Below, one piece after another: positions 3,968 through 58,475 of a stretch of DNA of 64,000 nt (positions are counted from its first letter, which is position 1; each line of letters begins with the position of its first letter). Location: positions 62,001-126,000 of IMG/VR virus record IMGVR_UViG_3300029893_000001. One strand, 5' to 3'. The position numbers were made by a program, and so were the translations under genes. Below the pieces are notes generated by a model, which made no database searches, was not told the origin of the DNA, and saw nothing but the letters and a program-made list of their open reading frames with translations.

Positions 3968-4309
3968 TCAGTCTTCCTCTTGATTCGTGGATCGTTTGCT
4001 GGAGTCCAAAATGTCAATTCCAAGTATGCCTTCCCATCTACGGACGCGCATCGCCGTTTTGTAGTCGATGGGAATGCCTTCGATAGAGTTGGCAGAGCTT
4101 CCTACAGGGGAGCCTGGTTTGTACCACCCAAACTTCTTCTCCTCGGGCGTAAGCTCCCTCTCATCGTCAAACGGGCCTATTTCTGAGGCCCGACAATTCT
4201 CGCAGTAAAATGGCCCGCACTGGACAAAACCCACCCCAACGTCTGCCCAGTCTGCGTAACATACTTCGCCACAGTAGGGACAAGTGGTTGTTTGATCGTG
4301 CAGACCCAT
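3968..4309 (-). CDS. zinc-finger hypothetical protein
   Basis: CPYC...CENC motifs. Confidence 0.6.
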   Translation of the reverse strand: MGLHDQTTTCPYCGEVCYADWADVGVGFVQCGPFYCENCRASEIGPFDDERELTPEEKKFGWYKPGSPVGSSANSIEGIPIDYKTAMRVRRWEGILGIDILDSSKRSTNQEED

Positions 4310-4313
4310 CAGG

Positions 4314-4865
4314 TCACCTTTCAGCGGGCGCAACGATGCGGAGTTTGCGGAAATCCTCCCAACCGTGCACTACCCAATCATCGTCATCTTTCTTCTTCCG
4401 AAGAAGGAGAGCGCTGCCCGTTGAGGGTTCTCCGCCGTGAGAGACCTTTCCGACCCGAAAGACCTCCTCCCCTTCGCCGACGCAGACAACTAGGTCATCT
4501 ACGAAGTAATCACGCCGCTCTGTCGCGTCTCGGTTGGCTTCCTTAAGAGCAGATAGCGTGGTCATTCCCTTTGCCCAAGCAACACCCTGAATGAAGCCGA
4601 GCCACCGCTGTGCCTTATCCAACTGACCGTCCGCAGCGAGCTTCTTCGTCTCCTCGAACATCCAAACAAGGTGCTTGAGAAGAGCTGTATTCGACACAGG
4701 CGACCCGTCCATTTCTACATCTGGGTCGACTCGTTCAGGCTGAACAAACTTTTGGACAGCTCTGTATGGCTGTCCAACCGGGTGTACCGAGGATTCGAAA
4801 ACCCACTTGATTTCATCGAACGTCTTGTCCAAAGACGTCCAAATTCGTGCCACATCCCAAGACAT
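4314..4865 (-). CDS. hypothetical protein
   Basis: 183 aa containing KAQRWLGFIQG. Confidence 0.6.
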   Translation of the reverse strand: MSWDVARIWTSLDKTFDEIKWVFESSVHPVGQPYRAVQKFVQPERVDPDVEMDGSPVSNTALLKHLVWMFEETKKLAADGQLDKAQRWLGFIQGVAWAKGMTTLSALKEANRDATERRDYFVDDLVVCVGEGEEVFRVGKVSHGGEPSTGSALLLRKKKDDDDWVVHGWEDFRKLRIVAPAER

Positions 4866-5056
4866 TATACACCCCTGTCTTCGCGCTTGATTGCTTCAGC
4901 GAATAGCTCTAAGCGTTTCTTTGCGTAGGCCTCGACGTGGGGGTCGGTTTCCCGGAGGCGGGCGGTAATCCAATCCGCAGCATCATACATCCCGTGTTCA
5001 TTCGCCAGTTTCACGAGATCGCGGATCTGGTCCGTAAGACTATCCTGGCGAGGCAT

Positions 5057-5434
5057 TTAGCCCTCCCAATAGACGGTGGACAACGTTCCCTGCTCTGGAA
5101 GATCCCCAAGTGCCAAGAGAATGTCGTTACCATCGATATCAATTCCAAGCTCCACGGGGACGTTTAGTTCGGAACTGGATAGTTCATCCATCCGAGAGGC
5201 GTCCCGTTGGTTGAAGATCTCAACAACGCAGTGGAGAATTCTTTTGAGAACCGGCGTCTCAGGATGAAATCTATTCAGTTCCGAAAACGGAATCCTCAGA
5301 TCTTGGTCCCCCATCAACCTGATGAGGGTCCCGATAGCTTGAAGCTCCGAGCCTGCACTCTCATCAATCTCTCGGTTGAGCTTCAGCCTGAAGCCGGTTC
5401 TTGTAAGTCTCTTGCCCATATCACCACAGAACAA
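5057..5434 (-). CDS. hypothetical protein
   Basis: 125 aa ORF within gene run. Confidence 0.55.
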   Translation of the reverse strand: MFCGDMGKRLTRTGFRLKLNREIDESAGSELQAIGTLIRLMGDQDLRIPFSELNRFHPETPVLKRILHCVVEIFNQRDASRMDELSSSELNVPVELGIDIDGNDILLALGDLPEQGTLSTVYWEG

Positions 5435-5719
5435 CTAATACGTTGGAGACAAGATGATCGCTTTGCGTCCATCCTCGATGAGGTCTTCCTCGTCGTATCC
5501 CTCTTCCTCCAACTCTGGAGTTAGTTCAGAATACCCGACCTCGCCGTACCAAGTCGTTTCGGCTCGATAGACCCCAGACCAAAATCCAGCAAGTGGTGTG
5601 TAGTCGTTCCCCTCGCCGTCCTTTGCCATAACGACGATGGCATCGGGGTCACATGTTTTCAGTTGCTCAATGAGCTGAGCAACCGTCATGGTATGCTCAT
5701 ACAGATCTTTGTCTGTCAC
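5435..5719 (-). CDS. hypothetical acidic protein
   Basis: MTV..LIEQL...DPDA.VV N-terminus typical of small phage proteins. Confidence 0.6.
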   Translation of the reverse strand: MTDKDLYEHTMTVAQLIEQLKTCDPDAIVVMAKDGEGNDYTPLAGFWSGVYRAETTWYGEVGYSELTPELEEEGYDEEDLIEDGRKAIILSPTY

Positions 5720-6678
5720 TTACCAGCTCCCAAGTATGCTTCCACCACATCTCGGACTCGCATCCAGTCCAAGCCACTGCCGAATTCACGATCCGAACCA
5801 CCAATGATGTCGGACCCATTCCAACTGACCTCCCGCTCGACAAGACGACGAGTGTCGTCCTCTATGAAAGCAGGAGGCTCTGCCTTGGACAACTCACGAT
5901 AGAGTTCTGGCACAGGAAAATCGATGTACCTAGAACGCCTTCCTATCGTGTATACGTAGCGACCGTCTGGACGCTGAGCTACGACACTAATGTAGCCGTC
6001 GAGTAGCCCCTGAGAAAACAGGGTGTACCGAGCCTCGTTACCCCCAATCTCGTTTACGATCTTGAACCGAGGCGAAGCATGCAGGATCTCGTATCGAGAA
6101 TCGAGGGACTTCTCTCCTGCCTGCCCAAGCAGAGCCGCATTCAGGTTCTCCATAACTGCCTGAATGCAGTTTCGAATAACCGTCTCGTCGGCGCGGGCAA
6201 GTGCACCTGACTTTCGAAGGTCAGTATACGGGCTGAAGATCCAACAATGCTGGCGGACGAGTGAGTCGTCAAGACTCATTGGATACGCCCCACCTGTAAT
6301 GTCCCAACGATCGTTTAGGGCCAACAGGCGACTAATAACAGGGTGGCTCTGTACTCCCGAAAACTGTTTGTGGTGCATCAGCAACCAAACAGCAAGGGCG
6401 GTATCTTGATCGGCGTCGTTGACATAAATGAAGCAACGATTGCCCATCCTATCCATGAGCCCGCCTTTGATAGCGAACATCACCTGCATAGCAGTGGACA
6501 TTGTCGCTTCACGAACGACGCCCTCATGATGATCAAAATTGACGTGAAGGGTCTTTTCGTCCCAAGCAGGCCCGCCGCGAACAACCCCGTCCAGCGCAAT
6601 AGAGCGTTGAGGAGTTAGGAGAACAAACTCCTCCCACGTAATCGACTGGCGAGGAAGAACTCTAATCTCGATACTCAT
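5716..6678 (-). CDS. DHH-like phosphoesterase
   Basis: IALDG, NFDHH and NDADQD motifs; start probably 6678. Confidence 0.55.
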   Translation of the reverse strand: MSIEIRVLPRQSITWEEFVLLTPQRSIALDGVVRGGPAWDEKTLHVNFDHHEGVVREATMSTAMQVMFAIKGGLMDRMGNRCFIYVNDADQDTALAVWLLMHHKQFSGVQSHPVISRLLALNDRWDITGGAYPMSLDDSLVRQHCWIFSPYTDLRKSGALARADETVIRNCIQAVMENLNAALLGQAGEKSLDSRYEILHASPRFKIVNEIGGNEARYTLFSQGLLDGYISVVAQRPDGRYVYTIGRRSRYIDFPVPELYRELSKAEPPAFIEDDTRRLVEREVSWNGSDIIGGSDREFGSGLDWMRVRDVVEAYLGAGK

Positions 6679-6700
6679 CGATATACCGCTTTCCTGAAGG

Positions 6701-7114
6701 TCAGGAGCCAGCGTTCTCGTGCTGCTCCAGCCAAGTAAGCAAAGCGTTGTTGGGGACGCCAACAGCTTGGATTTCCTGGCTGGATTCTCCTGTATCCTCG
6801 AAGTACCAGCCCTTCCCACCGTTGGCCACTGGCGTGTCGAACTTTACAGGACGTCCGGTCTTACGATCGACGACCCCCAGACGCTCCACGAGCTGAATCC
6901 CTGAGGGGCAGTCGACTCCTGTGTCCTCTACAGCTCTCACTGTTCCGTGAGGTGGACCCTTATCCCAATGATACTCAGTGAACAGGGTCTTGTATCCCCA
7001 CTCATACTGGATACCAATGAATCCGCTGGTGCCATTAAAGACAGCAACGTTGAAGTTCCGCGCTCGGACTCGGTAGAGGCGACCCTTCTTGCAGTCAACT
7101 AGAGATAAACTCAT
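6701..7114 (-). CDS. hypothetical protein
   Basis: ORF within gene run. Confidence 0.55.
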   Translation of the reverse strand: MSLSLVDCKKGRLYRVRARNFNVAVFNGTSGFIGIQYEWGYKTLFTEYHWDKGPPHGTVRAVEDTGVDCPSGIQLVERLGVVDRKTGRPVKFDTPVANGGKGWYFEDTGESSQEIQAVGVPNNALLTWLEQHENAGS

Positions 7115-7501
7115 GTTTGTTACTGTTGGCTGGAAATTCTGACAATCCAATCCTGTGAAAGAATGCAGTCACCCAACGTCCGCCATTTACACGAACGCAT
7201 TCTTCTTTGGCCTTCTTAACGGCCAATCGCCGAGTGCGACTAGCAACAAAAACAGGCTGACCGTCGCTGCGGTTGGAGGCATTCTCCAGCAAAACGAAGT
7301 AGTATTTCATCCGTTCTCTCTTGCCTCAAACCAGGCATGGAAGTGCTTTACCCACTCGGCTCTGTCCTGCTTGTCGGGCAGACGACCCGTGTCCTGTCCT
7401 TGACGGACCTGCTTTCGCCAGTCCATGACGTTCTGCAGTAGGTCCATGAATGCTTCGTCAGCAGTCATTTTAGGATTTTCAACCGGATTGCTCATAACTC
7501 C

Positions 7502-7780
7502 TCACGAGATTGGTTGGTCTTGATACCTACCAACGCAGTCGTTACAGATTCGCGCCCTAACGACACGCGGACCTTTCCACCAGCGGCCAATCTTCGAACA
7601 CTTTCGGCATGCAGGTTTCCCGCACGAATAACCAGGTTTCCCGCACGAATAACAGGTCGTTCTCGTGGAGCCCTCGCCTTCCGCCCATCCGCCTCCTGTA
7701 ATGCCGAATCCCGCAGGTGCTTCACAATCATTAGCCTGTAGGCTTACTTCACAAGCTCTACGCGCTCTTCTTTGCGTCAT
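7502..7780 (-). CDS. zinc-finger protein with internal 7-aa duplication
   Basis: CYSCGKP/GYSCGKP/ACRKC...ICNDC. Confidence 0.5.
   Translation of the reverse strand: MTQRRARRACEVSLQANDCEAPAGFGITGGGWAEGEGSTRTTCYSCGKPGYSCGKPACRKCSKIGRWWKGPRVVRARICNDCVGRYQDQPIS
7612..7653. repeat. perfect 21-bp tandem duplication
   Basis: caggtttcccgcacgaataac x2. Confidence 0.95.
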
Positions 7781-8420
7781 CGCTTGTCGCCTGAGATAGC
7801 TTAGGAAATGCAGCATGGAGCTTTTCTGCCGTTGGCCCATCTCCCTCAAACAATGCTGCGTATGCTTTCTGGTCGATGTTTTTGGGCTGAAGTGCCTCAA
7901 TCACCTGAGATAGAGCGCGAGCAAGCTCGGCGATGTCCGGCTGATTCTTCTCTTGAGTCATTTACGCTCCAAAAAGCATCTGTTTGGTATACTGCAAAGC
8001 TTCCTTGGTGAAGTGAGCCGCTTCTTCCGCAAGCTGTTTGGCTCTGTCGGCGTCACCACGGAGCACGGCGGCAAGCTGTTGATGAAAACGAACCCGAGCC
8101 TCTGCTATCGCTTCTTGCTTCTTGCGCTCGAATCATTAATCCAATTCGACGTAGTTCGTCATCGTCTACTGGAGCAGATTCCATGACTGGATTTTTACAC
8201 CACTACCGGCCTTGGTCAATCTCAAGGCCAAGAATGCGAATCCAGCGGCCACGAGCGTCATGCCCCCAATCTAACGCCCACTTGTCCGTGGGAACCGACG
8301 GCGCCCGACGATGGGGTGGATAAGCCCGGAGAAAGTCTTCTGGAGCCCACCAACAAATGTTGACGGGAATCCATGGGTTGCGATAGGCAATCCAAATTGT
8401 GGGGTGCATAAACCTTAAAC

Positions 8421-8456
8421 GTAAAACGGGCAGAGGGTTTCCTCTGCCCGTTTTAC
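8421..8456. terminator. bidirectional intrinsic terminator
   Basis: GTAAAACGGGCAGAGG-GTTT-CCTCTGCCCGTTTTAC. Confidence 0.8.
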
Positions 8457-31792: not shown

Positions 31793-33208
31793 TCATGTCC
31801 GTCGAATTGCGGACCCGTCAGCATGAACGAGGTATGAACCTGCGGTTATCATGTTGGAAGCGATTTCGGTGACCGGTACAAGTGTACCACATTCGTACGC
31901 TGTTCCCGCAACAATCGTTGGAGCCGTAATAATATGAACAGTCCCACCGCTCGTGGCCTTTACGGCTGTTCCTGTTCCAACGTCAACTGTCTGACCTCCA
32001 GTAAGTTGGATATCAGCACCACGCTGTGCGAGTACGCCAACGCCGTCAGAGGTGGACCGAATACTAGCGTCAATACGCAAACAAGCCCCAGTATACGTAG
32101 CCTGAATTACGGGGCTCGCTGCGGCCTCCACATCACTTGCCCCCGCATCTCCAAGGTAAAGCACGTGACGTGAAAAGTAGACGCTACACGCTCCGGATTC
32201 TCCGTTCCCCAACACGCGGATCCCATCAGTAATCCTGAATGCAAATACCTGTGCACGGGGGCAGCCCCACCAAACTGTTCGATGAGCATTTAAGCCCAGC
32301 AAATATGCACTAATACCAGTAAAGTGGAGATTGTTTGCGACCTGAACTAGGCCCCACGCGGCCCAGGAAGTGGCCGACGCTGCACCCAACTCCTGCCCAG
32401 CACGAGAAGCAATACCGTCGAGCTGAATGCCTGTGTCGCTCCCAACCTGAAGAGAGGAACCGCTTGGTGTTCCAGCGATCCAAACGTTAGTGGCTGCACC
32501 CACGATCTCAATGCCATGTAGACAAAGAGATCCAGTGAAGGAAATCTGCAGCGAAGCTGCCTGTGCGTCCACTTTGAGGTTAACCAGAACGAGGCCCTTA
32601 GCAGAATGTCTTAACCCCAAATTTTGAGCGCCGGAAACGGGATACCCACAACCTTCAGAAAGCATCCACGTATCTGTAGCACATCGAATAACGACAGCCG
32701 ACTCAGTAACTCGATACGCGCTTCCAGCGGGGACTGCTGCGCTGAATCCAACTAGAGGTATCAACGAGTTGCCTGTGTTCGTACGAAGAGTGCGCCTCTC
32801 CGTGGCCATAGCACCGTCAAGAATTTCTAATGTCTTGCCCCGAAGTACGTCATCTGCTCCAGTAGCCTCGTTCACAGTCTGGTTTAGGTTATTAGACGAG
32901 GACATCGTACCAGTGAGAAGCTCAACATAGTCTTCGCCAATCACATAGATATTCTCGTGGCAGCAGCGCGCATGAAAAAACGGAGGGTCATACCCAGCGC
33001 CTGGGTGGGCCTTAACGTGAATGAGCACAGGGTGCGTAACAACGAAGGGAATTCTCCTCTCAGCCTCAACGATTGTTGCGAGAGGAGAAGTTGCATCCCC
33101 TGTATTCGTGTCGGAACCAACAGCCGCGTCAACGTAAATGTCAACGCGCCCGTCTACTCGACTAACCGTGTAGGGAGAGATAGATATTGTAGACATCGTT
33201 CCCTGCAT
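31793..33208 (-). CDS. beta-helix/tail-fibre-like protein
   Basis: IYVD...GSD.NTG....PLATI.EA N-terminal motif; G/A/T/V-rich. Confidence 0.6.
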   Translation of the reverse strand: MQGTMSTISISPYTVSRVDGRVDIYVDAAVGSDTNTGDATSPLATIVEAERRIPFVVTHPVLIHVKAHPGAGYDPPFFHARCCHENIYVIGEDYVELLTGTMSSSNNLNQTVNEATGADDVLRGKTLEILDGAMATERRTLRTNTGNSLIPLVGFSAAVPAGSAYRVTESAVVIRCATDTWMLSEGCGYPVSGAQNLGLRHSAKGLVLVNLKVDAQAASLQISFTGSLCLHGIEIVGAATNVWIAGTPSGSSLQVGSDTGIQLDGIASRAGQELGAASATSWAAWGLVQVANNLHFTGISAYLLGLNAHRTVWWGCPRAQVFAFRITDGIRVLGNGESGACSVYFSRHVLYLGDAGASDVEAAASPVIQATYTGACLRIDASIRSTSDGVGVLAQRGADIQLTGGQTVDVGTGTAVKATSGGTVHIITAPTIVAGTAYECGTLVPVTEIASNMITAGSYLVHADGSAIRRT

Positions 33209-33508: not shown

Positions 33509-35149
33509 TCAGTCGAGCTGCATGCTCTCGATCTTCTCCACCCAGAACCGCGAGTCTGAACCCTGGCTGAAGGCGGAGATGACCTCAAACACTTGGTCGG
33601 AGAAGCCTCCGATGTTTAGCACCGAATTTCTCTCGTTTGGCACCTGAGTGGTCCCATTCGGTTGAACATCGATGCATACCAGCTTGCAGTCGGGGTTCTT
33701 AGCCTTGATCTGCTGCCAGATCGTCTCGCTCGCAGTGGCCGAGGCGCCGTACCAGTACGAGTACCTCTGCCGGTCCATCCACGACTCATTGTCAGAGACA
33801 ATGATGATCAGAGAAGGCTTGCTCCTCTGCCCAAGGATATGCTGGAAGCACGAGCTTACGTTCGTGCCGCCGCCTCCAATCGAGGCGAGTTTGTTTGCGT
33901 TGGTCATCACCGAATCCCTCGGGTTGAGGGACAATCTGGTGATAACCTGCTGCTCGAACGGAAGAACCTTTGCATTCGGAGAAGTGCGTAGAACAGATGC
34001 CGCAACTAGCGCAGCGACATCGATTACGCGGACAGAAGTCGTAGCGCCCTTACGGTGTCCCGTAACGGGCGAAGACATCGATCCGGACACGTCGGGGCAA
34101 ACCCAGACTTCGCCGTCGAACGCCGGAACGTTCTTGGTGGCGATCTCCATGGCATCCTGAAGAGCTAGCTTCAGCTCCATCGGGATGTCACTGTTTTTCT
34201 CCGTAGACTTGAACGCCATCAGGAGCTGATACGGGAATACCCGTGCCTTCCTGATTTCGTTCTCATCTCGAAGCTTGTCTGCAAGCTTCTTGACGACCGA
34301 AGCATCCTTTAACACACCGTGGCGTGCGAAGGTGTTCAGGTTCATCCGCACAAAGTGCCAACGACCGTTGAGAGCGATCTCTGTCCACTGCTTGGTGCCC
34401 AAGCTTAGCGCAGTGAGCATTTCGAACGGAACCTTCGGAACCTCGGCCGTCTTGGGAGACGACTTGAATTCCTCGAAGGACCGAATCAAGCGCGGTAGAT
34501 TGTCGGAGTTAGTCGCACCTTCCTTACCGAGTAGGTAATTGAAGGTAGCGTGCTTCTCTGCGTCAGAGCCGCTCTTGGGGCGTGCCAGGTGGATCACGTC
34601 CACAAGAGACGGGGAATTGCCGACGCTGTCACGGAAGATCTGCTCTGCAGTCCTTCGGTTGAACCAGTCCGCGATGACGGCCTTACCTGCGGTCCCAAAA
34701 GACTTACGACCAGTGACTCCAGATCTCACGATCTGTACGAAGTTGCGAAGCATCTTCGCATTGTCGATCGCGATGGGGAAGACCGTCTTGAAGAGACGAC
34801 GGTTCTCGGGATTCCCGTCCGCTGCACGAGCAAACAGGATAGCCGTCAAGAGAGCCGGCATGTCCTTCATAAAGGCGTTCTTTCGTGAGTAGATTGCCAA
34901 CTTCGCGAGGAAGCCGCTATCTACCTTCGACGCCATATCGAGGGTCTTCTTGAGCTGGTCCTCCGCCGACGCGTAGAACGTGCCGCTCAGCGTACCTGTG
35001 CAGGCATACTGCGCAAGTGCGCCGCGATGTCCGAGATCGTAAGCCAGGCCTCCTGCCTCGTTGCGGGTGGGTGCACCACTCGCATCGGTGGTAACAGGAC
35101 GCGGCTTCTTTCCACGCGGAGCAGAACCAAACAATTGCTTATTCGCCAT
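33509..35149 (-). CDS. rsr: Ro60 / TROVE-domain RNA-binding protein (Rsr orthologue)
   Basis: NEAGGLAY...GTFYAS, MLRNF, RMNLNT, FPYQL, vWA DVSGSM, GGTN, SDNE. Confidence 0.93.
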   Translation of the reverse strand: MANKQLFGSAPRGKKPRPVTTDASGAPTRNEAGGLAYDLGHRGALAQYACTGTLSGTFYASAEDQLKKTLDMASKVDSGFLAKLAIYSRKNAFMKDMPALLTAILFARAADGNPENRRLFKTVFPIAIDNAKMLRNFVQIVRSGVTGRKSFGTAGKAVIADWFNRRTAEQIFRDSVGNSPSLVDVIHLARPKSGSDAEKHATFNYLLGKEGATNSDNLPRLIRSFEEFKSSPKTAEVPKVPFEMLTALSLGTKQWTEIALNGRWHFVRMNLNTFARHGVLKDASVVKKLADKLRDENEIRKARVFPYQLLMAFKSTEKNSDIPMELKLALQDAMEIATKNVPAFDGEVWVCPDVSGSMSSPVTGHRKGATTSVRVIDVAALVAASVLRTSPNAKVLPFEQQVITRLSLNPRDSVMTNANKLASIGGGGTNVSSCFQHILGQRSKPSLIIIVSDNESWMDRQRYSYWYGASATASETIWQQIKAKNPDCKLVCIDVQPNGTTQVPNERNSVLNIGGFSDQVFEVISAFSQGSDSRFWVEKIESMQLD

Positions 35150-35219
35150 GGGACACCTCCAAATTGGAGTAGGGTTTAAAGACACAGAGCGTTAGCAACG
35201 ACCAACGCTCAAGAATAGT

Positions 35220-35349
35220 GCAGCGACAGGAAGTAAAGAGACTTGTTTTGTTTAGCTACTAGCCTTTTGGGCCGGTGGGACTTGAACCCACATTGAGAGA
35301 ATTTTGGTCTCTTGCTTTATCCGATGTAGTCCCTTTGAGCATTCGCTGC
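35220..35349 (-). ncRNA. Y RNA-like 1 (permuted tRNA-like module)
   Basis: GCAGCGAATG...GACTACA...T-arm GTGGG-TTCAAGT-CCCAC...CCTGTCGCTGC. Confidence 0.8.
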
Positions 35350-35353
35350 GATG

Positions 35354-35429
35354 AGCATCGCTGGGATTCGAACCCGGCTGGATTAGCCTACCAAGTAGAG
35401 GTGCATCCATCTACCCCCACTAACGATGC
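35354..35429 (-). ncRNA. atypical tRNA-like RNA with expanded anticodon region
   Basis: GCATCG/CGATGC acceptor, GGGTTCGAATCCC T-loop, TGGAT...ATCCA enclosing 21 nt. Confidence 0.55.
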
Positions 35430-35496
35430 AAATTGGAGCCTCCTTGGGATTTGCTGGTCAAGGTCGGCAGGAACACCAGATTCCGGAAGAATTAGT

Positions 35497-35570
35497 GCAG
35501 TGATAGGGAGTGTAGAGATGACGTGTTTTTCACCAAAAGAAAATGTAATCCCTACGAGCATTCACCCCGC
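35497..35570 (-). ncRNA. Y RNA-like 2 (short, no tRNA module)
   Basis: GGTGAATGCTCGTAGGGATTACA...ATCTCTACACTCCCTATCAC. Confidence 0.65.
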
Positions 35571-35576
35571 GATAGT

Positions 35577-35716
35577 TGGGCGACAGGAGATGAAGAGACA
35601 TCCATGGTTTTATGCTGCCGTTACACCACGTCCCCGCATGTGGGGACGCTAGGATTCGAACCTAGACCTCTTGCTTATCAGGCAAAAAAGATGTAGTCCC
35701 TTCGAGCATTCGCCCA
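35577..35716 (-). ncRNA. Y RNA-like 3 (permuted tRNA retaining a GAU anticodon hairpin)
   Basis: GGGCGAATG...TTGC-CTGATAA-GCAA, T-arm, looped acceptor CGTCCCC/GGGGACG, D-arm...CCTGTCGCCC. Confidence 0.82.
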
Positions 35717-35878
35717 GAAAATCGGCGCCCGTTAGGCTCTAATAGGGCGCCTCCGTCTTTTTCAGAGCCATACGGTCAGGATACCTGACCTTCAAAGACG
35801 TAGAGTCCCAGTTACACCAGCTTTGGTAGCTAGCTTGCTAAGCTACCGAGGTAGCTGTTGCGGAGGAACTCAGAAAAG

Positions 35879-36013
35879 TGCGACAACAGGAATTGGAGAG
35901 TGAGTTTTTCGCGTGCAACCCTTACACTTCCCCCGGATACATTCCAGGGGCCAGGACTCGAACCTGGTCCTCGTCCTCCCAATGGATGTACACCCTCCGG
36001 GGCATTTGTCGCA
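35879..36013 (-). ncRNA. Y RNA-like 4
   Basis: TGCGACAAATG...CCAGG-TTCGAGT-CCTGG...CCTGTTGTCGCA. Confidence 0.78.
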
Positions 36014-36046
36014 GAACTGTAGTTTTTCAGAGAACGAAGGCTAGCG

Positions 36047-36074
36047 AAACTAGCAGAACCAATGTGGCTGTCAA
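36047..36074 (-). promoter_or_regulatory. sigma70-like promoter for the Y-RNA/Ro60 cluster
   Basis: TTGACA-16nt-TAGTTT with TGn extension. Confidence 0.55.
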
Positions 36075-36107
36075 GAACTTTTTGACAGCTACTCTGTCTT
36101 TACAGAG

Positions 36108-43638: not shown

Positions 43639-43653
43639 TACCAAGCCCTCGCA

Positions 43654-43725
43654 CGCCTGCGGTGGGGATCGAACCCACGACATAGGGATTTAGAATCCCA
43701 CGTTCTACCACTGAACTACGCAGGC
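43654..43725 (-). tRNA. amber suppressor tRNA (anticodon CTA)
   Basis: Canonical cloverleaf; GGGA-TTCTAAA-TCCC. Confidence 0.88.
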
Positions 43726-43748
43726 AAACGGCACCAAGTTCTGGTGCC

Positions 43749-47481: not shown

Positions 47482-47612
47482 GCGCTGACAGGAGGTGTGA
47501 GGACCAGCTTCTTTTGCTCTACCAACTGAGCTACCCCTCCACACAACGGAGGGGGTTGGACTCGAACCAACGACACAAAGATTTACAATGTAGTCCTCAC
47601 TGCATTCAGCGC
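47482..47612 (-). ncRNA. Y RNA-like 5
   Basis: GCGCTGAATG...GACTACA, T-arm, looped acceptor CCCCTCC/GGAGGGG, D-arm AGCTCAGTTGGTAGAGC...CCTGTCAGCGC. Confidence 0.85.
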
Positions 47613-54370: not shown

Positions 54371-54406
54371 TCGGCGACAGGAGGTAGTCCCCGTTGCATT
54401 CGCCGA
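54371..54406 (-). ncRNA. Y RNA-like 6 (minimal 36-nt Ro-binding stem)
   Basis: TCGGCGAATGCAACGGGGACTACCTCCTGTCGCCGA. Confidence 0.65.
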
Positions 54407-54730: not shown

Positions 54731-55339
54731 TTAGTGAAGTGATCGATTCTTTCGATTCTGAAAGGCTTCGTACTGCTTCTGGGCAAAAAGTTTGCCCTCC
54801 GCAGTCGTTGCCCAGAAACCATTCTCGCCGCACACCCAAAAGCGGCCCCTACCATGATGCTCGCAGCGATGGCATGTAGTGCCAGCCAGATGCCATTCGT
54901 CCGAAAATTCGCGGTAGCCCCAACTCAGGCCGTGCCGATGAGCTAATGAATTCATGCATCGCTCGCACGTCTCTGCTGCAAGCAGGACAGCCATTTCAAA
55001 GTCGTACGTCTTCGCAAATGACCCATATCTCAGAAACTGAATTGTGCGGTCCCTTAGGGTAGGCCGGCACATTGCGAGCACGAGATCAGAACTGTACGAC
55101 GATGTAGCTGAAGCTATAAGCTCACAGCCACCATCATCTTTCAAGCGCAACCACTTGGTGTGAACTTCTCGTGGAAAACGACTGACCTGAATGGTCGCCC
55201 CGCTCGGCGCACCCTGCCACGGTTCTGTGGTGGCTGGGATATACTCGCCTTCATCGTTTTCGTACCAAATGCGCTCAAATCTAAATGCCATTTCTAAGCC
55301 CCGCTGAAAAGAATTAGACGACAGGTGGTGCAGAGACAT
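54731..55339 (-). CDS. hypothetical protein
   Basis: CERC...CHRC; true start probably MAFRFE. Confidence 0.55.
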   Translation of the reverse strand: MSLHHLSSNSFQRGLEMAFRFERIWYENDEGEYIPATTEPWQGAPSGATIQVSRFPREVHTKWLRLKDDGGCELIASATSSYSSDLVLAMCRPTLRDRTIQFLRYGSFAKTYDFEMAVLLAAETCERCMNSLAHRHGLSWGYREFSDEWHLAGTTCHRCEHHGRGRFWVCGENGFWATTAEGKLFAQKQYEAFQNRKNRSLH

Positions 55340-55458
55340 TTACCGCTACGTCTGCCAATTTCGCCATACAGCTCCTAGGAGCTGCACCCGGACTCGAACC
55401 GGGACGCCACGTGGGCCGCGGTTTCTTTGTAGATGTAGTCTCTACGGCATTCGTCTAA
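55314..55458 (-). ncRNA. Y RNA-like 7 (Leu-type class II mimic)
   Basis: GACGAATG...variable arm, T-arm, looped acceptor, D-arm TGGCGAAATTGGCAGACG...CCTGTCGTC. Confidence 0.85.
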
Positions 55459-58200: not shown

Positions 58201-58335
58201 GTGTCGACAGGAAGTGTGAAGACGACTTTACGGTGTCCTGGACCTCTAGACGAACTCCCCACAAACAGGGGAGTCTAGGATTCGAACCTAGGTTACCGGC
58301 GTGGTAGGCTTGTAGTCCTCACGAGCATTCGACAC
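58201..58335 (-). ncRNA. Y RNA-like 8 (Glu-type mimic)
   Basis: GTCGAATG...CCGGTAAC, T-arm, looped acceptor, D-arm TCGTCTAGAGGTCCAGGAC...CCTGTCGAC. Confidence 0.85.
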
Positions 58336-58343
58336 AAAAAGAA

Positions 58344-58475
58344 GCACTGACAGGAATTGGAGTGACATTTGGAGCCAATTGCTCTACCCCTGAGCTACCA
58401 GTCATCCAGGATGACTGGGCGGGACTCGAACCCGCGACCTACTGGTTAGATGTAGTCATCTCCGGCATTCAGTGC
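58344..58475 (-). ncRNA. Y RNA-like 9
   Basis: GCACTGAATG...GACTACA, T-arm, CCAGTCAT/ATGACTGG, D-arm...CCTGTCAGTGC. Confidence 0.85.

Follow-up and report, generated by a model that had tools for sequence, protein, structure and literature searches.

The binding partners of the tRNA-like half of bacterial Y RNAs have been a question since 2014. Because the one solved structure, that of Salmonella YrlA (PDB 6cu1, bioRxiv 10.1101/312249), "lacks the anticodon loop", thinking has centred on the elbow formed by the D and T arms. The anticodon-stem equivalent of this RNA consists of two strands leading to the Ro-binding module, and a dimeric-tRNA model for the origin of YrlA is cited in the same work (bioRxiv 10.1101/312249). 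In many other YrlA RNAs a less conserved stem-loop, named 'V', was described upstream of the T arm by Chen et al. 2014 (PMC4201824), who equated it with the variable arm of tRNAs; the GNCGAAN0-1G motif of YrlA RNAs is also defined there. The original prediction for the locus studied here, that in typical YrlA the Ro stem replaces the anticodon loop, describes the solved Salmonella RNA, but not the many RNAs for which 'V' has been published. Since this stem-loop is in the literature, the position of the hairpin described below was already known and only its anticodon-arm character is new, the literature compared (to which the Wolin-laboratory reviews of 2018 and 2020 do not belong) calling it a variable arm. 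YrlA's tRNA-like domain has also been floated as a competitive inhibitor of an anticodon nuclease, and the Salmonella rsr operon responds to the cleavage of tRNAs in the anticodon loop (PMC7790460).

Here we describe Y_a, a Y RNA of a jumbo phage that can be compared with several known RNAs. Yrn1 of Deinococcus radiodurans, judged an independent lineage, was likewise modelled with a possible 5-bp 'anticodon arm' (PMC4201824), but it differs from Y_a by a 6-nt loop, a different order of the arms relative to the RNA ends and a doubtful D arm. The TYMV TLS also mimics the anticodon domain (bioRxiv 10.1101/312249). Together with tmRNA, it resembles Y_a in being a non-tRNA that mimics tRNA, but both have free CCA ends and are charged, whereas in Y_a the acceptor end is closed and a Ro-binding module is attached. 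Circularly permuted tRNA genes were reportedly described in Cyanidioschyzon merolae by Soma and colleagues in 2007. In these genes the anticodon arm, T arm and 3' acceptor strand come before the 5' acceptor strand and the D arm, and ordinary mature tRNAs are made from them via a circular intermediate. The match of Y_a to them is limited to the order of the parts; unlike theirs, its flanks pair into a Ro-binding stem that is conserved, and an ordinary tRNA-Ile(GAU) is present in the phage too. Nothing suggests that Y_a would be processed to a normal tRNA through a circular intermediate.

Y RNA genes of the phage and the rsr neighbourhood

The window, i.e. the whole stretch of 64,000 nt analysed, comprises bases 62001-126000 of a 392,328-bp virus record (jumbo phage) judged complete. 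The sequencing runs in which the Y_a sequence occurs are DNA metagenomes only (subsurface, rock) and, as the metagenome contigs over 35100-36100 are identical to the window, this region offered no variation to exploit. Megablast of the Y_a locus against deposited phages gave zero matches and a scan of the locus found no promoter-like site. About ten Y RNA genes were found in the phage, four of them in tandem upstream of rsr on the same strand and the others among tRNA genes. These genes and rsr are the following:

33509 to 35149, minus strand: rsr, Ro60 homologue of 546 aa from the ATG at 35149 (Pfam TROVE and vWA_Ro60)
35220 to 35349, minus strand: Y_b (the 'Y1' of the original prediction), with hairpin AGAGA-CCAAAAU-UCUCU, T arm and short acceptor-like hairpin
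35499 to 35566, minus strand: Y_c, short Y RNA, sole apical element the hairpin UUUUC-UUUUGGU-GAAAA (35527-35543)
35577 to 35716, minus strand: Y_a, YrlA type, 140 nt (Rfam YrlA RF02553, MFE fold, covariation)
35880 to 36012, minus strand: Y_d, sister Y RNA, hairpin CAUCC-AUUGGGA-GGACG (35972-35988)
47482 to 47612, minus strand: Y_e, among tRNA genes
54371 to 54406, minus strand: minimal Y-like hairpin of about 37 nt, CGGCGA-AUGC...GGGGACUAC..CUCCUG-UCGCCG
55316 to 55456, minus strand: Y_g, among tRNA genes
58201 to 58335, minus strand: Y_h, among tRNA genes
58344 to 58475, minus strand: Y_f, among tRNA genes
G000:126725-126876, just outside the window: Y RNA copy with an extra 6-bp hairpin after the D arm

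The rsr ORF spans 33509-35185 on the minus strand, with the real ATG at 35149, and its product is 61% identical to the Rsr of the related 424-kb phage G002 and 50.6% identical to the Rsr of Myxococcus phage Mx1. The 3' end of Y_a (35577) lies 428 nt upstream of this ATG, both being on the minus strand, so that Y_a is placed as YrlA genes are, within ~4 kb of rsr and on the same strand. Directly downstream of rsr there is an ORF of 471 aa (31793-33208, minus strand) without Pfam or PHROG match, a candidate partner of the Rsr/Y RNA system. On the other side, a GC-rich hairpin GGCGCCC...GGGCGCC followed by GAUUUUCU (35716-35751, minus strand) ends exactly at the first base of Y_a and may be a terminator-like element or signal processing between Y_d and Y_a. 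It is absent from our consensus scan list, its loop exceeding the length allowed in that scan.

Among the tandem genes, Y_c has no tRNA-like domain and shares its hairpin loop exactly with the phage tRNA-Gln(UUG), which suggests that a Ro-binding stem can carry an anticodon-like hairpin by itself. The second hairpin that had been pointed out in this array is indeed present in Y_b (35296-35312), but position 2 of its loop is not U and the RNA has no D arm. Between Y_c and Y_b there is also a tRNA-like element of 75 nt (35355-35429, minus strand, with a leader to about 35497) that has an acceptor-like stem of 7-8 bp, a T arm (GGGUUCGAAUCCC) and an odd interior, with an MFE z of -1.8; neither ARAGORN nor Rfam called it. 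A stretch partly like it (65% column identity, same T loop) was found just upstream of the G002 rsr, where ARAGORN gives a 'tRNA-???' with a 4-base anticodon.

The D-arm halves of the Y RNA genes scattered among the tRNA genes resemble different tRNA species. They are generic in Y_e and Y_f, Glu-like in Y_h (20/23 to the phage tRNA-Glu) and Leu-like in Y_g, which has in addition a short hairpin of class-II type. The minimal form at 54371-54406 is located directly upstream of tRNA-Glu and contains Ro-binding motifs and nothing else.

Fold of Y_a and its resemblance to a permuted tRNA

The MFE fold of 35574-35716 (minus strand) has an energy of -51.1 kcal/mol (z = -3.06, 0/200 shuffles as good). 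All the elements that had been claimed for this Y RNA were found in sequence and MFE fold, on the minus strand. After the Ro-binding stem come a hairpin, a 4-nt connector, the T arm, a loop-closed 7-bp acceptor and an imperfect D arm:

35710 to 35716, minus strand: stem 1, 5' strand UGGGCGA, 7-bp closing stem paired with 35577-35583
35707 to 35714, minus strand: GNCGAAN0-1G motif (GGCGAAUG), proposed Rsr-contact motif (sequence)
35696 to 35703, minus strand: stem 2, 5' strand (GAAGGGAC), 8 bp, paired with 35592-35599 and followed by the conserved UACAU
35670 to 35686, minus strand: anticodon-arm-like hairpin UUUGC / CUGAUAA / GCAAG, loop at 35675-35681
35666 to 35669, minus strand: connector AGGU of 4 nt, in length and sequence like the variable loop of class-I tRNAs
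35649 to 35665, minus strand: T arm CUAGG-UUCGAAU-CCUAG (Rfam, MFE fold)
35629 to 35648, minus strand: acceptor-like stem of 7 bp, CGUCCCC/GGGGACG, with the 6-nt loop ACAUGC (MFE fold, ARAGORN, covariation)
35612 to 35628, minus strand: U8-like base and D-like arm of GUGUAACGGCAGCAU type (MFE fold, covariation)
35600 to 35611, minus strand: A-rich 3' linker (AAAACCAUGGAU), whose AUG can pair with CAU at 35691-35693
35592 to 35599, minus strand: stem 2, 3' strand (GUCUCUUC) (MFE fold, covariation)
35577 to 35583, minus strand: stem 1, 3' strand UCGCCCA (MFE fold, covariation)

Stems 1 and 2, the T stem, the acceptor-like stem and the D arm have covariation support from 13 homologues. The hairpin has a core of 5 bp and two more outer pairs are possible, giving up to 7 bp. 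The U of the connector may, in our reading, form a Levitt pair of the A15:U48 type with the D loop. In the acceptor loop the first base, A, occupies the place of the discriminator and is followed by C. The weakest element is the D arm, for which two forms are possible: GUG/CAU, with 3 bp and a 9-nt loop, or a stem of 6 bp that includes a G.G mismatch. A D arm of this type (GUGUAACGG...) was also found in the contigs L148 and L155 and in Streptomyces phage Satis.

Y_a is like YrlA in being beside rsr on the same strand, in its paired ends, in the GNCGAAN0-1G motif near the 5' end and within the end-pairing stem (GGCGAAUG) and in having the T, acceptor and D elements in the same permuted order. 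Its closing stems carry the GNCGAAUG motif, and an acceptor-like stem-loop is flanked by the T stem-loop and the D stem-loop, the latter of the divergent GUGUAACGG type with three good pairs. In contrast to the YrlA of Rfam RF02553, it scores below the gathering threshold of 69 (31.4 bits, with an E of 1.7e-4 when 1.5 kb were searched); the hairpin of Y_a, for which the model lacks positions, becomes a 20-nt insert, and paralogues of Y_a score 61.7 and 54.8 bits. It also departs from Salmonella YrlA in that the anticodon-stem helix is closed by a 7-nt loop of anticodon type, and in RNAs of the Y_a type the Ro stem hangs from the 26/27 junction via a linker of 2-7 nt and an A-rich one of 10-12 nt.

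The hairpin has all the attributes of a canonical anticodon arm, namely a 5-bp stem, a 7-nt loop, U33 and a purine at 37 (UUUGC-CUGAUAA-GCAAG), and the stretch from the hairpin to the T loop aligns colinearly with tRNA positions 27-63 with ~78-80% identity. As had been noticed, its loop CUGAUAA is identical to the anticodon loop of the phage tRNA-Ile(GAU) (54216-54288). The stems of both have nothing in common, and with no similarity between the stems a recent copy of the phage's own tRNA-Ile was rejected.

The arms of Y_a follow each other as they would in a tRNA whose acceptor end had been closed and whose chain had been opened between positions 26 and 27. After a cut in the acceptor loop and joining of the end of the D arm to the hairpin, ARAGORN identified a tRNA-Ile(GAU) with every junction length tried, and the same operation converted most of the hairpin-bearing homologues into ARAGORN "tRNAs" in which the anticodon is taken from the hairpin loop. 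Both the arm order and the ARAGORN result on the rejoined sequence make the description of Y_a as a complete circularly permuted tRNA accurate, the D arm being its weakest part. Y_a does not form a contiguous canonical cloverleaf with free acceptor ends. On the unaltered sequence the Rfam tRNA model RF00005 gave 28.2 bits against a gathering score of 29, with the D arm deleted in the alignment, and ARAGORN gave a "tRNA-Ile" at 35640-35713. Both use the hairpin, the connector, the T arm and a makeshift acceptor taken from a strand of the Ro stem. This makeshift acceptor pairs equally well when strands of different paralogues are combined (p = 0.49), i.e. the pairing is not conserved, so we consider both the Rfam tRNA and the ARAGORN calls artefacts of a real resemblance. 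An alternative conformer, suspected to be a conserved switch or an internal repeat since Y_d and Y_f behave likewise, was attributed to chance on the same comparison, in which duplex energies within 35 RNAs were set by permutation against those between mismatched RNAs (-5.31 vs -5.30 kcal/mol, p = 0.49).

The hairpin in related Y RNAs

Homologues were gathered with the Rsr protein and by scanning collections of viral sequences, metagenomes and genomes for motifs, a start that was motif-selected. A loose 14-base motif gave mostly chance matches in the viral contigs and tighter motifs were used instead. The sources were phage G002, the contigs L148/L161, L155, L139, L110, L114, L031 and L009, the phages Mx1, Satis and Myrna and a Prosthecobacter genome. 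One of them, L139 (IMGVR_UViG_3300009179_000175), a viral contig of 112 kb estimated to be 52% complete on which no Rsr homologue was found, contains ~13 Y-RNA-like genes, short and long, in ~4.2 kb (4250-8440).

Two architectures were distinguished among the related Y RNAs. In the classical one (Y_e, Y_f and Y_h) the strands preceding the T arm and following the D arm pair with each other, forming an open equivalent of the anticodon stem with a one-base link to the D stem. In the closed-hairpin type, to which Y_a, Y_d and many others belong, a closed hairpin stands in place of this stem and the D arm is followed by an unpaired linker, A-rich, that is common to the hairpin-bearing homologues. 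A hairpin with five stem positions and a 7-nt loop, located 2-7 nt before the T stem, was found in 21 of the 37 distinct related Y RNAs of phages and bacteria, compared with 6.2 +/- 2.2 (maximum 14 in 2000) in shuffled controls, and seven is also the modal loop size. The presence of this pattern at a fixed place in the Y RNA family is far beyond chance. The other 16 have no such hairpin and their junction is closed by an ordinary stem, indicating that the family can do without it. Carriers of the hairpin type include Streptomyces phage Satis, Mycobacterium phage Myrna and, in the Verrucomicrobia, a Prosthecobacter genome. The geometry of an anticodon arm is common and conserved in related Y RNAs, where the element had until now been interpreted as a "variable arm".

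In an anchored alignment (A1) all five stem pairs have changed on both sides. The inner three are formed in 95-100% of the sequences versus 40-48% when the partner columns are slid, percentages that are inflated by a set chosen for having the hairpin and that include some ambiguous registers in U/A-rich stems. Independent of this choice is the class with the stem CAUCN/NGACG, in which the covariation CC/GG, CU/AG, UC/GA and CA/UG was found and the stem is kept with differing loops. The hairpin was missed by RNAalifold when full-length MAFFT alignments were the input, since this length-variable region is misaligned in them, hence the use of the anchored alignment.

The sequences of the loops follow the rules of anticodon loops. 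Position 2 is U in all 17 loop families, which are not fully independent of each other, compared with 24% of 35,679 genomic hairpins that have this geometry. A purine occupies position 6 in 15 of the 17 and A occupies position 7, likewise in 15, and the central triplet (positions 3-5) varies freely. Besides, G37 accompanies G36 in 6 of 8 loops and another base 36 in 0 of 13 (Fisher p = 5e-4), a coupling that runs in the same direction as in real tRNAs (G36-G37 and (A/U)36-A37). In five of the 17 families the loop is that of a real tRNA from the same contigs (Ile-GAU, Ser-GGA, Tyr-GUA, Asn-GUU and Thr-UGU), and most of the loops without an exact match are one change away from one. On the other hand, position 32 is A in 7/17 families, rare in real tRNAs (4/197), and the triplets AUG, AUU and AUC match no natural anticodon. 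These triplets and the frequent A32 argue against faithful copies of particular tRNAs, and point to a mimicry of shape that would not always be that of a particular tRNA.

A check proposed originally was whether the loop of Y_a itself is conserved in homologues, and its outcome is split. The hairpin and the frame of the loop are kept, but the Ile triplet differs in the nearest ones. The homologue with the most similar Ro stem, at 202373 of G002, has (U)CGC-CUAUUAA-GCG(G), in which the CU..UAA frame is kept and the triplet differs. The most similar overall, L155 (CAUCU-CUAUGGA-AGACG) and L148 (CAUUC-AUACGGA-GAACG), share with Y_a the sequence of stem 2, the connector, the D arm and the 3' strand. 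Relative to both, Y_a retains CAUC but then has a different hairpin, and its 3' linker has an extra CAUGGAUG able to pair with the orphaned CAU. In Y_d, 20 of 20 positions of hairpin and connector are identical in G002, a phage with just 61% identity in Rsr, with diverged T, acceptor and D arms. The geometry and the loop frame are thus conserved, the triplet is sometimes, and the Ile identity of Y_a is not.

The most serious alternative to an anticodon-arm mimic, unlikely in our opinion, is that the hairpin is only the known 'V' of YrlA, a variable-arm strut of the tRNA-like core, and that the match to the tRNA-Ile loop is a coincidence. This is how Chen et al. 2014 (PMC4201824) interpreted a stem-loop at this place, the Ile triplet is not kept in homologues, and a single match has a background chance of ~0.75% per hairpin, the frequency with which genomic 5-bp/7-nt hairpins have some anticodon loop; five exact matches in 17 families are far above it. 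In the class-II tRNAs of the same contigs (36, of which 34 were scored), the variable arms have loops of 3-5 nt in 30/34 cases, mostly 4 nt, and connectors of 0-2 nt in 27/34, mostly 1-2 nt. Y_a, with 7 and 4 nt respectively, does not have these dimensions, and in the related Y RNAs the connector to the T stem is mostly of 4-5 nt, often AGGU(C), as in class-I tRNAs. Neither the 7-nt loop nor the invariant U at position 2, R37/A38, the 36-37 coupling or the connector of 4-5 nt is a class-II property here. One RNA of the phage does fit this description: the short hairpin of Y_g, its closing stem between which and the T arm the hairpin lies, and its Leu-like D arm indicate that a true variable-arm mimic also exists in the phage.

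Possible roles of the hairpin

On balance, we think that Y_a is a YrlA-class Y RNA whose apical half mimics a whole permuted tRNA, and that its hairpin has probably been kept by selection as a look-alike of an anticodon stem-loop. The paired 5' and 3' ends with the GNCGAAUG motif would serve the phage Rsr (Ro60), whose gene follows directly downstream, as a handle, and this Ro-binding stem would be attached where tRNA positions 26 and 27 would meet. The apical half would provide the anticodon-arm-like hairpin, the 4-nt variable loop, the T arm, the loop-closed 7-bp acceptor and the D arm. The hairpin corresponds to the published 'V' stem-loop and would here be a look-alike with a 5-bp stem and a 7-nt loop of U-turn type with U33, R37 and A38, the central triplet being free to differ between paralogues and species; Y_a would simply happen to carry the loop of tRNA-Ile(GAU). 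The analysis shows the anatomy, the link to rsr and the pattern of conservation, and from there we infer that Y_a is expressed, is bound by Rsr and has a partner. Once on Rsr, the RNA would present a tRNA-shaped surface, anticodon loop included, to factors that inspect this end of tRNAs, candidates being anticodon-loop modification enzymes, anticodon nucleases and the ribosome. It could act as a decoy or as an adaptor that brings Rsr, and any nuclease it may act with, to those factors. That the partner reads the anticodon end is likely given that the stem is kept while the loops change within tRNA rules, and given the persistence of the feature from actinophages to Verrucomicrobia.

If the fourth stem-loop is a conserved mimic of the anticodon arm, then the whole tRNA is mimicked and the search for partners of these RNAs should include enzymes that read the anticodon loop. 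The CUGAUAA loop would then be predicted to carry t6A37 and the ..GG-G-A loops m1G37, with cleavage or inhibition by anticodon nucleases as a further prediction. Such a role ties in with the reported link of the rsr operon to the cleavage of tRNA anticodon loops. A far-reaching version, to which we give little credence, is that 'V' is a working anticodon stem-loop, and that phages and bacteria would have panels of Ro-tethered permuted tRNA mimics, each displaying a different anticodon loop. The loops would receive the modifications of position 37, the mimics with 7-bp acceptors such as Y_a would be opened by RNase P and gain CCA, and all would serve as decoys or sensors for anticodon nucleases or other readers during infection.

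The hairpin could also be a leftover of descent from tRNAs, either the anticodon arm of the first tRNA of the dimer or the product of a later gene conversion by a tRNA-Ile, with a loop that has no present function. A dimeric-tRNA model exists (bioRxiv 10.1101/312249), the Y genes are located among 28 tRNA genes, the colinearity with tRNA positions 27-63 is high, and Y_a looks remodelled in comparison with L155 and L148, with a new hairpin after CAUC and the extra CAUGGAUG. We find this improbable, however, as there is no near-identical donor tRNA in the phage and the stem is wholly unlike that of its tRNA-Ile. Furthermore, the CAUCN/NGACG stem is constant and the loops on it change within tRNA rules, indicating point mutation under selection rather than repeated copying, and the feature is conserved across very distant hosts. 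The suggestion that Y_a might be a one-off evolutionary intermediate fails for the same kind of reason: the hairpin spans from actinophages to Verrucomicrobia, with covariation and invariant loop positions, and this broad occurrence, together with both properties, speaks of selection rather than of a leftover. A tRNA-dimer origin fits the anatomy, the hairpin being the first tRNA's anticodon arm, but this arm would be maintained and not transitional. These RNAs are a natural data set useful for examining that proposed origin.

Within a selected anticodon-arm mimicry, a more specific function, also proposed originally, is that of bait. Y_a would be a decoy or competitive inhibitor for a host anticodon nuclease against tRNA-Ile(GAU), and the paralogues (UGG, UUG...) would cover other nucleases. 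The idea is reasonable in the light of the published suggestion of a nuclease inhibitor and of the response of the Salmonella rsr operon to anticodon-loop cleavage (PMC7790460). The loop of Y_a is identical to that of tRNA-Ile(GAU), with the U36-A37 context, and the paralogues of one phage differ in their triplets (GAU, UGG and UUG here; ACG, GUU and GAA in the L148 contig). Against it, the triplet is unconserved between homologues and some triplets are not natural anticodons. We also searched the phage for RtcB, an RNA repair protein that would hint at pressure from anticodon nucleases, and found none. This specific bait role seems to us improbable, and the broader mimicry of an anticodon arm described above does not depend on a particular triplet. 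Very improbable is a processed form, in which RNase P would cut the acceptor loop before GGGGACG and a phage enzyme would add CCA, the product being a tRNA-Ile-like molecule, nicked and tethered to Ro, with the potential to be charged or to enter the ribosome: M. smegmatis YrlA, with its 7-bp acceptor stem, is a precedent, being cut by RNase P and gaining CCA in vivo, Y_a has a 7-bp stem with A at the discriminator place and then C, and the phage encodes an enzyme of the PolyA_pol/CCA-adding family, but most homologues have acceptor stems of 8-9 bp and the pairs outside the anticodon that are said to be identity elements for IleRS are not evident.

The gene for the PolyA_pol/CCA-adding family enzyme is outside the window (G000:C1 13073-13444; 442-aa frame, 123.9 bits), as is the phage's own tmRNA (G000:C1:130644-131041), with a tag ending in ...AEPLPLAA. 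In the whole record, ARAGORN gave 43 tRNA calls, excluding the spurious one in Y_a, plus the tmRNA; 28 tRNA calls are in the window, every one on the minus strand. A tRNA with the anticodon CUA (amber suppressor) was found at 43653-43726 on the minus strand, labelled 'Pyl' by ARAGORN and scoring 69.8 bits with the Rfam tRNA model. In a jumbo phage, it may be a hint of TAG reassignment or suppression during infection.
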